From Octopus bimaculoides (taxonomy: Eukaryota): a DNA stretch of 64,000 nucleotides. A program made the translations under genes and the position numbers. Under the pieces are notes generated by a model, which worked only from the letters and a program-made list of their open reading frames with translations, was not told where the DNA came from and searched no databases. Each line of letters opens with the position of its first letter. Within the stretch, counting starts at the first letter, position 1. This document shows, one piece after another, positions 22,174 through 43,105 of the stretch. Location: positions 1,648,434 to 1,712,433 of the forward strand of contig NC_068994.1 in assembly GCF_001194135.2 (NCBI RefSeq). Direction: 5' to 3'.

Positions 22174-22422
22174 CCAGATTATAAATTCCCATTTATACCA
22201 GTAATAATTTGTGCACTTTGTTTTGTGGGTAAATGCCAAAGTGACGATTTGGATAAGCTAGGGTTTTCAGAAAATACAAATCAGCCAACTGATTTGCAGG
22301 CTACAAATACAGTCTGTAAGTGGAACAGTAAAAATATGCAAGGCTTTTCTCAAGTTTAAAATGTGTTTTTGTTATCTCCATTCCAATGGTGGAGATTTGC
22401 ATCTTTGTTAGAAAGCAGCTCC
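22174..22422 (+). repeat. Copy A of a ~250-bp inverted duplication (partner 42849-43105)
   Basis: 22190-22357 is identical to the reverse complement of 42922-43089 (168 bp, checked base by base); the flanks differ by substitutions and an indel. Confidence 0.95.
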
Positions 22423-23214
22423 TTCCTCAGGGCAAGAATTACAAAACCAAAGACAGAAGAGAACAGGCAAACATACATACGTAACTATTACTATCCAGGC
22501 CATAACTGACCTGATTTAATCCTAGGCCACCATTCTTTAGTTAACTTCAAGAAGATACAGTATCGCAAATGTCTATTTCAAGAGCTGTCTCTCTCTCTCT
22601 CTCTCTCTCTGCTATGCTGTTTACATTGTAGGGACTTGAATTCCAAATGCAAAATTACCAGTTTGCTGTCATAAATGAACCACACCATGTTCACAAGAAC
22701 AACCTAAAAATCGATTAATCAGCTTGAAGCTATGCTGTGAACATCATCAGCAATATTCTTGAGGTTCGAACCCCTTTTCACTATTTAAGTAGTTTGATGT
22801 CTAAATCATCCCAGAGCACTGTTGGCATTCAAGCAGGGCAGATCTTGGCTCTCACCTGGTAAATAAAGAAAGAAACCTTAACCAGTTTCAGCAGACTCAT
22901 ATCTTTTTGTCTCTCACTTTTCAGATAATTAATGGCTGGGCAAATACAGTTCAGTCAATCCTTGCATCCTAGTCTTGTTACCAGTGAAGATTTGATAATT
23001 TATGTATATATTCTTGCTTAGCCTTCCCTTAATAATATCAGTTGTTAAATGTTTGCAGGTCTGCTTTTGTTGTAATACATATAGCTAATCTTATCTCGCA
23101 TCACAATTAATACAGCAATGACATCAACTTTTACAATCATACAACATACATCAATACCCAAACCGTGACATTGACAACCCTGCAACCAAAAGCTTCAATA
23201 ACAGCCACTTGCCA

Positions 23215-24385
23215 TAAGACTGCCACTAAACCTACCGTCCGTTTTGTTAAAGAAATCTGAAGAATATGTGATTGGTCCACAACAAGACAGAAATATCAAC
23301 CAAACATTGCATTTTTGTGGATGGTATGAAAATATATTCCAAGAATATGGATGGTAAGAAGGTAAGTGATGATGACCTAATTATGACATTCTCAAATGAT
23401 ACGGGGATGGAGTTGGCCTGAAAAATATGTTCTTAACTGGTTGTAAAACAAGGACGAATTGCAAGACCACCGAGTATCAATAGAATGACTGTTGCTTTGA
23501 TATCTGATGAGGAATATACAGAGACATAGGAATAGATGAAAATATCTCCTAAGATGGAAATTGTGACAAGGAATGTGCAATCAGGGAATACAGCATCAGG
23601 ATAAAGAAAACAGTCTTGTTGAAACCTTCTGCATGCAATATATTGATAGCCTACAACGTATTTTGTCATACAAGTGCTCATACAAAATATCTGGGTTACT
23701 TGATTGATGATGCTACATGAGATCCAGGCCATTGATGTTAAACCCTGAACATTGTTAATCTCTACAGGAATTTCTATATCAACAGCCTTGGAGACTAAAT
23801 TTACTTGAAATGAAAACAGAGGCTTAAACTCAATGCAAACAGCTTTTGAATGTCATATTATATCCTTTCTATAAGAAATCATCAGAAGAGAAGCTGGACA
23901 CAGACTAGTAGCAGGTCAGGCACGGCTATATTCCCAGAACGCTTCAAAGTGACAGCAACAATGGCAACCAGAAAAATCTGTCCTAGGCTAACAACCCTAA
24001 CAACCAAGACATTAGTTCTTACTTTGAAGTATATATTTTTGTAATGTGGAAGCAGAAAATGACCACAAAATACCTGATGCTCAAAAGGGACGGGGATTCA
24101 AAGAAACTATATGACAACCAGTGTATAGCTTATAGAATTAATTTTGAGGATGCTACCCAGCTAAAACATTATAGAATGAAATCTGTAGAAAAGATAATCC
24201 TGAGGAGATGAATGTATGAAAGTATAGCGATGTGGAGGGAACAACCATTCATGTTATGAAAGAATATTGGTGGAATGTCTCTGTGAAGATTTTCATAAAA
24301 TGCAAGTATAACAGGCCAGACATAACGATCTGAGATGGAGAAAAGAAACTAGACATGATTGTTCAAATCAGTTGCCCAGCAAATA
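23215..24385 (+). mobile_element. R4/Dong-like non-LTR retrotransposon remnant (RT domains 5-7 through the restriction-like endonuclease)
   Basis: LNLPSVLLKKSEEYVIG..HCIFVDGMKIYSKN (FxDD-like at 23314-23325)..TFSNDTGME..YRDIGIDENIS*DG..EYSIRIKK..EIQAIDVK..RGLNSMQTAFEC..WWNVSVKIFIKCKYNRPDITI*D..IVQISCPAN. RPD at 24313-24321 is the REL-type endonuclease motif. Confidence 0.85.
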
Positions 24386-24669
24386 TGTTTTTTTTTTGTT
24401 TTCACTTATTTCAGTTTCATTAGACTAGAACCATGCTAGGGCACCACTTTGAAGAATTTAAGTTGAATGAATCAACCCAGGATATATAGATATACACAAC
24501 AGGCTTCTTTCAGTTTCCGTTTAGCAAATCCACTCACAAAACTGGTCCAAAATTACAGTAGAATATGCTTGACCAAGATGCCACACAGAGAGACATGTTA
24601 AAGATTATTAAAGAAGCAAACATGATGAAGTGATGAGAAATTTGCAGCGACTCCATCCAGTCAATAATT

Positions 24670-24848
24670 TTAGATGTCTACCGATGCTGGTGTGTTGAGG
24701 TCTCCGAAACTTGGTTCCGCAAAAGAGACCGATAGGATAAGTACTTGGCTTACAAAGAATAAGTCTTGGGTCGATTTGCTCGACTAAAGGCGGTGCTCCA
24801 GCATGGCCACACTCAAATGACTGTAGCAACTAAAAGAATAAAAGAATA
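24670..24848 (+). mobile_element. SINE, 3' part
   Basis: gataagtac..ttacaaagaataagtc..gggtcgatttgctcgactaaaggcggtgctccagcatggcc, homologous to 10015-10115; ends in a (TA)n tract. Confidence 0.8.
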
Positions 24849-40165: not shown

Positions 40166-40481
40166 TGTTATATTTCAGGATGGTCATTTTTCATTTTTTT
40201 TTTTCTTTTTCCCACGTAAACACACGCACTATACATTTGTTCTTCATTTCAGATTTGTTATTGCTCATTTTAGTGTTGTTTGTCTGGAAATCTTTCATCA
40301 TGCGTCCTGTGACCTCTTCAGCAACTATCCATCCCATGTCTCCTCCTGTTCTGTTTAGTCCATGGACAAAGGGTGTAAAATAAAAACAATAATATATTTA
40401 AAGGGAAGAACGAATATATAGTGCTTGTGTTTATTTGGCAAAAAAAAAAAAGAAAAGAAATGACCAACCCAAAATATAACA
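40166..40481. mobile_element. Palindromic MITE-like element, copy 2 (~120-bp inverted arms)
   Basis: tgttatatttcaggatggtcatt..taaacacacgcactatacatttgttcttc versus the reverse complement of gaagaacgaatatatagtgcttgtgttta..aatgaccaacccaaaatataaca. The ORF track shows near-identical peptides on opposite strands here. Confidence 0.8.
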
Positions 40482-41676
40482 GTATATAGGTATACATATC
40501 CATTATGTGTAACAGAAATTGTATTAGAATGAAATGGCCATCTGTGTATCATACCTACAAAAGCCAAATTGATTGTGGTGTTTGTCTACAGATGATAGCC
40601 CCTAGGGACATGCTGTGTCAAAAAAACGAAAAATATATCAGTAGCAGATGAAAGTCATCTAAAGGCAATGGTGGCAAAGCTAGGTATGCATTGTCCATAA
40701 GAGATATACTGTAGTTAACTTAGCTTTCATTACGTATTTACGTTAAGTAATATATAATATACACATCTCTCTCCCTCTCTTTATTTATATATATATACAC
40801 ACACACACACACACATTACACATTTATATATGTGTGTGTGTGTTTATATATCTATAGTCAATGTAATGCTATCTGCTTTGAAATCCACTGCTCCAAGCAG
40901 AAGGAAGCATTCAATAGGATGCGTAAATTGGTCTGTGTTAAGAAGGGAATCCAACCATAGAAAGCCATGTCAAAGCTGACATTGAAACTTGAGCGTAACC
41001 TTGCAGCATGCCGGATCCTCTCATACTGTCCAACTCATGCCAGCAGGGAAAACAGACGTTGAATGATGATAATGACGATCATAATGATGATGATGGGGGG
41101 GGGGGGGTGATGGTGGTGGTAATGATGATGGTGATGTGGCCTAAAAGGAAGTGCAGTTTCAAAAACTTAAACAAGGAAGTGTATTTGTTTCACTTTAGTG
41201 AAGAATTGTTTAATCAAAGAAGGGAGACAGCAAATCTACCAAACAAAGAATAATCTGGCCTTGACATGCATTTGGCTGCTGATGCAGCATTTGCAGCCTC
41301 TGCCTTTACCAGTGTTCCACTAATGGTGCAATATTCCTCCCATACTGCTAAATGTGTTTGGTCTCACCAGGAACTTAAAAAGAAAGGAAGGAATTCATCA
41401 TTATTGCTCTACGCCAAAGCAAGAAAAGGAAGGACATCTTGTCCAGTCAGGCCTTATTTCTTGCTGAAAATCTCATAAAAGTGGATGGACTTGAATAAAT
41501 GTGTGTATGTATGTGTATATATTTATATATAGAGAGATAGATAGATAGATAGATAGATATACATAAGAATATATATATATATATAAATATATATGTATAA
41601 GGAAAATAAAAGAAGGTAGAAAATGCTAAAATAATTTTATCATGAAGAACATTTCAGTCATTGAGATTTTTTCAAC

Positions 41677-41748
41677 TTGGAGTAAAGAATGAAAAACAAT
41701 TAAATTGTGAAAAATTAAATGAAAATTGTTTTTCATTTTTTACTCCAA
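41677..41748. repeat. 25-bp inverted repeat (24/25) with a 22-nt spacer, abutting an N gap
   Basis: ttggagtaaagaatgaaaaacaatt (41677-41701) and aattgtttttcattttttactccaa (41724-41748). Confidence 0.9.
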
Positions 41749-42848
41749 NNNNNNNNNNNNNNNNNNNNNNNNNNNNNNNNNNNNNNNNNNNNNNNNNNNN
41801 NNNNNNNNNNNNNNNNNNNNNNNNNNNNNNNNNNNNNNNNNNNNNNNNNNNNNNNNNNNNNNNNNNNNNNNNNNNNNNNNNNNNNNNNNNNNNNNACACA
41901 CACACACACACACACACACACATATACATACATATATACATAGTTACATACATATATAAATATAGATATATTCTATCCACTGACAAGAGATTTTTCAATT
42001 AAAAATAGAGAGTCACCCGAGTTTTTAATTGATGAAATATACACAGGTAATTAAGAGATGTAATTAACTGAAGTATTAAATGTAAAGAAGTTGTTGATGA
42101 TGATGATAAAGATGATGATGACGGTGTAGTTGATAAGGATGATGTTGAATATGATGTCAATGATGATGATGGCTGACGTGGTGATGATGACGATGCTGAT
42201 ATTCCACTTTGGCCTGGGTAACATACACTTCTTTTTCAGCCCTGCCAACTCAGTCATATTGACTTGAATATATACACCTCTATCTCAGACTACTCTATAT
42301 TCTTAACACTCCACCCCTTATCACACACCTCTCCTACCATCACTCCTGCTCTTCACTTTGTAAAGAGACACATGAGTGACCAGAAATGTGCAACTGTGAG
42401 GTCCCTTTAACCACGGTAAGGACATAACTACCTCCATAATTGGGGTCACATAAAAGGTACCCAGTACACTCTATCAAGTGTAAGGTTATGGGGGACCTAT
42501 TAGCCGTGTCAAGGACAAGTTGCCCCGTTATGGCTGGTGGCATGAAAAAGCAGCCAGCACACTCTGCAAGGTGTTTGGCATTTGGAAGGGCATTGAGTTG
42601 CAGATCCATTCCAACATGAAATGGGAGCAAGATGTGGTCCTTTCAAACCATGAAGAAGAGCAAAAACATCTCAACCTGTTAGCATGGACAGATTATTTAA
42701 AACAATGATGATGGTAATGATGATGATGTCTACAGAAACATACCCACATATGCACAAACACACACATGCATATATGTGAACTCACACACACATGCATCTA
42801 TGTATGGTCACTTCTATTTTTCATTATTTGAAATCTCCCTGTAAAGCT

Positions 42849-43105
42849 GGAACTGCTTTCTAACAAAGATACGAAGCTCCAACATTGGAATGGAGATAAC
42901 AAAAACAGAATGTCACTTCTAAAACTTGAGAAAAGCCTTGCATATTTTTACTGTTCCACTTACAGACTGTATTTGTAGCCTGCAAATCAGTTGGCTGATT
43001 TGTATTTTCTGAAAACCCTAGCTTATCCAAATCGTCACTTTGGCATTTACCCACAAAACAAAGTGCACAAATTATTACTGGTATAAATGTGAATTTATAA
43101 TTTGG
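42849..43105 (-). repeat. Copy B of the inverted duplication (partner 22174-22422)
   Basis: See copy A; identical core at 42922-43089. Confidence 0.95.

Follow-up and report, generated by a model that had tools for sequence, protein, structure and literature searches.

How two old copies of a repeat come to share a long stretch without a single difference is the question raised by a locus in the protocadherin array of Octopus bimaculoides chromosome CM046614.1. In the window (the whole 64-kb stretch of DNA that we analyzed), positions 22190–22357 on the plus strand, the core of copy A, are by direct comparison the exact reverse complement of positions 42922–43089, the core of copy B on the minus strand, with agreement at 168 of 168 positions and a spacing of ~20.5 kb. 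The first-pass annotation of this DNA had reported such a perfect inverted repeat and had described the adjoining ~80 bp as diverged by substitutions and an indel; both observations were reproduced. The outer 21 bp are identical at 17 positions (81%) and the inner 83 bp at 66 (80%), the latter segment also containing an 8-bp indel, past which identity falls to ~60% or less. An inverted-repeat scan of the window delimited arms of 196 nt at 22170–22365 and 42914–43109 (97% identity), and gapped blastn aligned 22170–22422 with 43109–42849 (261 columns, 92.7%). The other repeats in the window are decayed, as had also been stated: the remaining non-microsatellite pairs are 69–93% identical, and the longer of them (at least 95 nt) 69–85%.

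A chance origin for the clean run is excluded. Given 22 differences in 273 columns, a run of 168 columns free of differences has a probability of ~4e-9, and none of 200,000 permutations reached that length (the longest run was 126). Likewise, a GENECONV-style test found 32 consecutive concordant sites among 66 variable sites, 21 of which were discordant (P <5e-6).

The arms proved to be two old copies, in opposite orientation, of an interspersed repeat of ~275 bp. Copy A occupies 22170–22440 on the plus strand (blastn, nhmmer, and alignment with the other copies, with limits at 22169/22170 and 22422–22440), and copy B occupies 42829–43109 on the minus strand (blastn and nhmmer), at the end of its contig and adjoining a (TA)n microsatellite. 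A third copy, C, with ~78% identity, belongs to the same array at a distance of ~200 kb (23795–24067 of sequence L003). All three have the same left end, (T/A)ATCCAGATTATAAATT, and the same right end, near ...GTTCCAGCTTTA.A..AGAT, and all three are surrounded by unrelated sequence with identity at the random level. Since copy C shares the ends of A and B but is surrounded by unrelated sequence, the unit is a dispersed repeat and not a local segmental duplication; dispersed copies with common ends place it in an interspersed, transposable-element-derived family. Apart from C, 224 kb of non-N O. bimaculoides sequence yielded no further copy, and metagenome and prokaryote collections scanned for the pattern gave no match.

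As to the class of the element, we considered a SINE with a tRNA, 5S, or 7SL head and an internal pol III promoter, and we found neither feature: ARAGORN called no tRNAs and Rfam no matches at the gathering score in the window, and no A-box or B-box motif was seen by eye in the unit. We also rejected a MITE or other DNA transposon with terminal inverted repeats, as the unit contains only short internal inverted repeats, its 5′ end pairing with unit positions ~76–87 and not with its 3′ end. A 9-bp sequence, AAGAGAACA, occurs at copy A at 22162–22170 and again at 22457–22465. Because a homologous AAGTGACCA stands at the corresponding internal position of copy B, the 9-bp repeat may be part of the unit rather than a target-site duplication; the candidate duplications at copies B and C are 6-mers only.

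Copy C provided an outgroup against which the two arms could be compared. Over the core, A and B are identical (1.00) and each is 0.80 identical to C. In the flanking segments, A–B identity is 0.80–0.81, A–C identity is 0.70–0.76, and B–C identity is 0.75–0.81, and over the inner 83 bp copy B is nearer copy C (75%) than copy A is (70%). Judged by this one outgroup copy, on which the family comparison of the flanks relies, A and B appear outside the core to be no closer to each other than random family members, their ~80% identity being no nearer than that of either arm to the unlinked copy C. The arms are mosaic, with 100% identity over 168 bp and ~80% on both sides: a run of identity too long for the background divergence, set between diverged homologous flanks. 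This pattern supports the recent gene conversion that the first-pass annotation had put forward, and a single ectopic conversion tract between two old repeat copies is, in our judgment, the probable explanation, if held with some reserve.

General conservation of the core fails to explain why A equals B, because positions 22190–22300, over which the two arms do not differ, are only ~72% identical to C; the better-conserved block of the unit is 22300–22357 (93% versus C). The only two identical cores that we saw share a chromosome and are separated by 20 kb, as distance-dependent ectopic conversion predicts. Mismatch repair suppresses recombination between diverged sequences, however, and conversion between A and B, at only ~80% identity, is for that reason expected to be rare. 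For these very protocadherin arrays, gene conversion has been put forward as a homogenizing process (PMC9068888). The distance from the core to C (0.196) is lower than the distances from the flanks to C (0.25–0.30), a gap of ~1.4 standard errors that would also fit a core near the family consensus, and with one outgroup copy it cannot be shown that the shared core carries the private mutations of an old donor.

On the conversion reading, copies A and B are separate old insertions of one non-autonomous repeat, in opposite orientations, into non-coding DNA upstream of a protocadherin gene, and each has drifted ~8–13% from the ancestral sequence of the family. Subsequently, a short patch, no less than 168 bp and no more than ~179 bp long, would have been copied from one arm into the other by ectopic (non-allelic) gene conversion, that is, by homology-templated repair of a break, erasing the differences within the patch. 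One paired position in the 5′ stem of the unit hints at the direction of transfer. This position is A-U in copy B, G-C in copy C, and G.U in copy A, with the tract including the U of the copy A pair but not its G, as though B had been the donor and A the recipient.

The alternative that survives best is an effect of assembly, which we regard as possible but distinctly less probable than conversion. Here the cores would be similar and not identical, or the contig holding copy B would be misplaced or misoriented, and a short-read de Bruijn assembler, through bubble popping or gap closing, would have written one consensus path into both arms. The chromosome is indeed a short-read product, made by Hi-C scaffolding of an earlier published shotgun assembly (PMC9068888), and the 64-kb window has 13 N gaps. 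Two of these, at 39230–39264 (35 N, within a compound (TA)n(CA)n microsatellite) and 41749–41895 (147 N), lie between the arms, outside both of them, and are crossed by no reading frame; a third, at 43161–43428 (268 N, within (TA)n), lies 52 bp outside arm B. Flanked by the second and third of these gaps, copy B is confined to a contig of only 1,265 bp (41896–43160), and no repeat or other feature in the window was found that would confirm continuity or orientation across the gaps. The 20.5-kb spacing and the inverted orientation, which rest on scaffolding, are therefore provisional. The sequence identity of the arms, on the other hand, is solid. Copy A is part of a contig that runs for 18.4 kb without a gap (20853–39229), and the B-specific flanks are joined straight to the core at 43090 and 42921, so reads must link them to at least one k-mer of the identical core on each side. 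Judging from how de Bruijn assemblers work, a core of 80% identity would have no k-mers in common with A and so could not collapse; such an assembler might raise ~98% identity to 100%, but it could not produce the mosaic. Short-read assembly could thus have slightly overstated the perfect identity.

Somewhat less likely again is a young, active repeat of modular ("jigsaw") construction, in which a central module is common to two subfamilies that differ in their end modules. Youth would then account for the identical core, and the genome would contain many other near-identical cores. SINE superfamilies that share a central domain but have exchanged end modules are described from molluscs (PMC4758252), and both the well-conserved block at 22300–22357 and the slightly lower core-to-C distance noted above are in keeping with such a design. 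No near-identical core other than A and B was present in the remainder of the 64-kb window or in the 224 kb of extra sequence, a sample that caps such copies only at fewer than ~36,000 genome-wide. The differences between A and B in the flanks, however, are scattered point substitutions of the same density as those versus copy C, a picture of neutral decay rather than of exchanged modules, and the left edge of the perfect block lies just 20 bp inside the unit, so that a "module" of 20 bp would be needed.

We attach very little probability to a functional RNA, the reading in which selection would maintain identity for a long-range duplex in a minus-strand pre-mRNA, serving as a splicing bridge, an ADAR substrate, or the carrier of a micro-exon. 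If co-transcribed, the arms are predicted to form a very stable duplex over the 168 bp of perfect complementarity (-299 kcal/mol), but this is unremarkable because it holds for every inverted repeat pair, and the O. bimaculoides genome is unusually rich in such pairs (PMC5625713). It is also the case that O. bimaculoides heavily edits non-coding double-stranded RNA (PMC5625713) and that the genes of the array are all on the minus strand, with some models exceeding 100 kb, so that a long transcript over the region is conceivable. The only verified gene near the repeat by gene model and exon mapping, though, is protocadherin P0001 (853 aa), whose large first coding exon lies at 3413–5830 on the minus strand (Pfam Cadherin, E 7e-72; 100% match to P0001). 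It starts at 5830 and leads leftward, away from the repeat, with its other exons to the left of the window. No gene was called over 5831–15830, and neither protocadherin 3′-exon-like sequence nor any other exon was detected in 6–64 kb. Moreover, long-range splicing that joins variable first exons to a common set of downstream exons is reported not to occur in cephalopod protocadherins (PMC9068888).

The core itself argues in the same direction. The sequence TTTTCAG-N45-GTAAGT, within the window limited to copies A and B, had been taken for a frame-preserving, micro-exon-like unit, but in copy C the "exon" has a 5-nt deletion, leaving 40 nt, and the acceptor TTTTCAG is changed to TTTTAAG; a search of 5.8 billion proteins gave no relative of the open frame through the unit. 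The 45-nt sequence is thus neither conserved nor frame-preserving. Since the copy C core is only 80% identical to those of A and B, the family shows no constraint on the core, and selection for pairing would in any event allow compensated changes and would not need identity. None of the RNA roles suggested in the first-pass annotation, whether selection for pairing, a splicing bridge, a dedicated ADAR substrate, or a micro-exon, finds support in these results, nor does any RNA function of the pair; on one transcript, the arms would form ordinary repeat-derived double-stranded RNA. More doubtful still is a particular version in which a minus-strand array transcript passes through both arms and keeps the pair identical, the duplex acting in cis. 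Were it true, the 168-bp duplex could be, for example, a source of heavily edited double-stranded RNA or of small RNA influencing the downstream protocadherin gene, a cephalopod counterpart of the non-coding-RNA control of vertebrate clustered protocadherins.

Finally, it is scarcely credible that the arms are the terminal inverted repeats of a ~21-kb DNA transposon (Polinton/Maverick-like or a composite element): the ~20.5-kb inverted spacing, the sharp outer and fading inner edges, and a Tc1/mariner-type HTH fragment between the arms (36301–36621) fit such an element, but no target-site duplication is present at the outer ends (...GAGAAC before one unit, CTATAT... after the other), the interior consists of microsatellites and decayed repeats without long ORFs or transposase, polymerase, or capsid domains, its sole Pfam match being the 107-aa HTH fragment, the non-core parts of the arms are only 80% alike, and copy C is a solitary unit that stops at the same inner boundary and is without a partner in 49 kb.

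Should the conversion tract be real, it would provide a small and clean case of ectopic exchange at only ~80% identity, situated in an array for which homogenization of the genes themselves is proposed, and tracts of this kind, counted genome-wide, could measure the frequency of exchange in octopus. The finding is otherwise an ordinary one and opens no new question. This genome is exceptionally rich in inverted pairs capable of forming double-stranded RNA, and nothing links the present pair with splicing, editing, or coding. It also carries a caution, in that a perfect block within diverged repeats on a gap-rich short-read scaffold should be confirmed by reads before it is given a functional reading.

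Ectopic gene conversion has been described between primate Alu elements and between the arms of inverted repeats. The present case is similar in that a perfect tract of at most a few hundred base pairs lies within diverged copies of the same family on one chromosome and is bounded at its ends by ordinary mismatches. It differs in that A and B are only ~80% alike outside the tract, below the level usually regarded as permissive, and in that conversion is deduced here from just one assembly, made from short reads, with one outgroup copy. In primates, inverted Alu pairs also form double-stranded RNA that is hyper-edited by ADAR. Like the hyper-edited repeats of O. bimaculoides (PMC5625713), A and B are inverted copies in a highly hyper-editing species and would, on a common transcript, form a perfect duplex of 168 nt; unlike them, the arms are ~20.5 kb apart, whereas that survey covered 2 kb on either side, none of the gene models examined covers A or B, and their pairing is predicted from sequence. 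With the modular mollusc SINEs (PMC4758252), the unit has in common a short non-autonomous form, a better-conserved internal block (22300–22357), and a CA/TA-rich tail, but at ~275 bp it is without a tRNA, 5S, or 7SL-like head or clear target-site duplications, and three copies of it are known. Closest to hand is the homogenization proposed for cephalopod protocadherins (PMC9068888): although coding genes are involved there, and here a 168-bp patch of intergenic non-coding repeat, both concern one chromosomal array and one proposed process, acting between nearby paralogous sequences.

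The window carries two inverted arms, copy A (22170-22440, plus strand) and copy B (42829-43109, minus strand), that have a perfectly identical core. Direct sequence comparison showed that 22190-22357 in A is the exact reverse complement of 42922-43089 in B (168/168), whereas segment counts from the alignment gave 17/21 identical bp on the outer side and 66/83, with an 8-bp indel, on the inner side, past which A-B identity drops to ~60% or less. The repeat listing of the window records the arms as 22170-22365 versus 42914-43109 (196 nt, 97% identity), and gapped blastn extension carries the pair to 22170-22422 versus 43109-42849 (261 columns, 92.7%). 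If the 22 differences fell at random among the 273 columns, 168 successive columns would be free of them with a probability of ~4e-9; the longest such run in 200,000 permutations was 126. The remaining non-microsatellite repeats of the window are 69-93% identical (69-85% for those of at least 95 nt). The first-pass annotation, which had described an exact 168-bp block, diverged adjoining parts with an indel and decayed repeats elsewhere, was accurate on all three counts, and the arm pair with its identical core is a genuine feature of the assembly.

Within the window the repeat unit occurs only as A and B. A profile search of additional O. bimaculoides DNA from the same chromosome (the protocadherin loci of P0001, P0007, P0012, P0014, P0017 and P0042, 254 kb outside the window, of which 224 kb are non-N) uncovered one further copy, C, at 23795-24067 of locus L003, ~200 kb from the window copies, within an intron of a different protocadherin gene model, to which it lies antisense. 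Copy C is 77-79% identical to A and B and has the same left and right ends. Because its flanks are nevertheless unrelated, the unit is, as judged from these alignments, a discrete dispersed repeat of ~275 bp and not a local duplication. Scaled up from the single copy in 224 kb, the genome would hold roughly 10,000 copies, an order-of-magnitude estimate with very wide limits. The 53 kb sampled from the orthologous locus labeled Argonauta hians (that of P0002) and the 35 kb of O. vulgaris DNA (the P0019 locus) yielded no copy, and metagenome contigs (scanned twice) and prokaryote genome contigs gave no exact-pattern match, as expected. A haplotig or segmental duplication was ruled out, since homology ends at both unit boundaries. 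The unit has no terminal inverted repeats, and no convincing target-site duplications were found around its copies. Neither Rfam (at the gathering threshold) nor ARAGORN gave a hit anywhere in the window, eliminating a known RNA family or tRNA-derived SINE. The 5' end of the unit (positions 1-12) pairs with positions ~76-87 in B (43100-43108 with 43024-43032) and in C (24054-24065 with 23981-23992 of L003), where a pair that is A-U in B corresponds to G-C in C, a compensatory change; C folded better than shuffled controls (z = -3.4) and B did not (z = -0.85). The repeat family may pass through a structured RNA stage.

Copy C made it possible to compare the core and the flanks on a common scale. 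In the flanking parts identity was 0.80-0.81 for A-B, 0.70-0.76 for A-C and 0.75-0.81 for B-C, so that by this measure A and B appear no closer to each other than either is to its unlinked relative. In the core, identity was 1.00 for A-B and 0.80 for both A-C and B-C. A GENECONV-style test on 66 variable sites set 32 consecutive sites at which A equals B against 21 discordant sites elsewhere (P <5e-6). The segment 22300-22357 is a well-conserved block of the family (93% identity to C), but across 22190-22300 C is only ~72% identical while A and B are the same, and general conservation therefore cannot account for the identical block. The best explanation, in which we place moderate confidence, is a conversion tract: after one repeat family had inserted twice, long ago and in opposite orientation, ectopic gene conversion or templated break repair would have transferred a patch of 168 to ~179 bp from one copy to the other. 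Consistent with this, A and B lie near each other on one chromosome, and no other near-identical core occurs in the sampled sequence. A single site hints that B was the donor: at one stem position B has A-U, C has G-C and A has G.U, and in A the U lies within the tract but the G does not.

An effect of assembly on the perfect identity of the cores is possible but unlikely. Of the 13 N runs in the window, three lie between the arms or just beyond B. The gap check confirmed that 39230-39264 and 41749-41895 fall between the arms, with neither touching an arm and no reading frame crossing them; the third, at 43161-43428, begins only 52 bp past arm B. A is within an 18.4-kb gap-free contig, and B is thus at the end of a tiny contig of 1,265 bp (41896-43160) with a gap on either side. 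De Bruijn assembly is able to remove small bubbles that arise where repeats are nearly identical. Against this, the core in B runs at either end into flanks that are B's own, and had it differed by 20% it would have had no k-mers in common with A; an artifact could presumably raise identity from ~98% to 100% but not create the mosaic. Microsatellites host two of the three gaps; the other, 41749-41895, has unique sequence on one side and an (AC)n run on the other. We found no repeat or other feature crossing any of the three gaps that would confirm continuity or orientation. The letter identity of the cores is firm, but the 20.5-kb spacing and inverted orientation of the arms can be trusted no further than the scaffolding itself. 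The contigs of the O. bimaculoides assembly are short-read shotgun contigs. The assembly is an earlier shotgun assembly scaffolded by Hi-C (PMC9068888). Elsewhere in the window, 15168-20852 and 43161-51489 consist of contigs of 0.6-2.9 kb separated by gaps mostly in TA/CA microsatellites, and local order and orientation there are weakly supported.

Alternatively, A and B could belong to a young modular subfamily, which we consider rather improbable. Molluscs are known to harbor central-domain SINE superfamilies (PMC4758252); the distance of the core to C (0.196) is slightly, though not significantly, below that of the flanks (0.25-0.30); and our sample bounds the number of near-identical copies only to fewer than ~36,000. 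The flank differences, however, resemble scattered neutral decay.

The window is on CM046614.1, a 60.6-Mb chromosome record whose coordinates equal window coordinates plus 1,648,433. An 815-codon open frame with cadherin domains at 3389-5833 on the minus strand (Pfam Cadherin, E 7e-72) is a 100% match to the O. bimaculoides protocadherin P0001 (853 aa) and is its large first exon; the gene model and exon mapping place the gene start at 5830 and the exon end at 3413. Coding exons 2 and 3 are small and 3', 15-17 kb downstream and left of the window, and the next protocadherin gene begins 2.6 kb beyond the end of P0001. The annotation consulted, which extended to 15.8 kb of the window, has no gene call over 5831-15830. 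At ~1.88-2.03 Mb of the record and elsewhere there are several protocadherin models of 100-125 kb, one of which encloses another protocadherin gene and ends 40 bp inside the next; these are either long read-through transcripts or over-joined models. The protocadherin P0002 (L002, GCA_054771915.1, labeled Argonauta hians) is 88% identical to the O. bimaculoides protein, well beyond the best matches in O. sinensis (72%) and O. vulgaris (65%), which is unexpected for an argonaut and could reflect a labeling issue or differential gene loss.

A function through pairing of the arms in RNA, as the first-pass annotation had proposed, is very doubtful. If on one RNA the arms are predicted to pair at -299 kcal/mol, as is true of any inverted repeat, and, given array models of >100 kb, a long intron may span both. 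But the sole verified gene, P0001, heads away from the arms, no exon-like sequence was found in 6-64 kb, and a published account holds that cephalopod protocadherins do not join variable first exons to shared exons by long-range splicing (PMC9068888); these same points speak against a splicing bridge within a pre-mRNA. A comparison of the C-terminal 90 residues of 120 protocadherins with the window matched the known exon only. Nor did the suggested 45-nt micro-exon hold up: the frame that stays open across the unit, 74 aa long in A and longer still in B, had no candidate relative among 5.8 billion proteins, and in C the 45-nt unit is shortened to 40 nt, with TTTTCAG changed to TTTTAAG. As for editing, O. 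bimaculoides had the highest hyper-editing signal in one survey, and the share of its loci that could give rise to long, nearly perfect double-stranded RNA was exceptionally high (PMC5625713). The pair would be one potential ADAR substrate among very many.

That the arms are terminal repeats of a 21-kb transposon is scarcely credible, as the interval has no long ORFs, no target-site duplication and no protein domain other than a Tc1-like helix-turn-helix fragment, and copy C is solitary. That fragment, a 107-codon open frame at 36301-36621 on the plus strand with helix-turn-helix domains of the Tc1/mariner (Sleeping Beauty-like) transposase type (Pfam), had no catalytic domain nearby and is probably a decayed element.

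Other repeats are scattered through the window. A second, commoner SINE-like family containing GGCGGTGCTCCAGCATGGCCACAGTC has five copies (9971-10138, 24688-24853, 26423-26572, 28846-29010 and 62270-62316) in both orientations, with 69-84% mutual identity. A 128-bp near-palindrome at 25560-25687, with arms ~75% complementary and a (TG)n run at its center, may represent either a microsatellite-centered hairpin or a foldback element of small size. Old repeat pairs (72-85%) link 21863-22059, which stops ~110 bp upstream of copy A, with 61610-61815; 39518-39713 with 62851-62657; and 39045-39139 with 58794-58702.

Our best reading of the arm pair is thus a conversion tract in the non-coding DNA of a protocadherin array, in a repeat that is unclassified. 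It would be a new instance of a known process. In these same protocadherin arrays, gene conversion has been put forward as a homogenizing force on the genes (PMC9068888).
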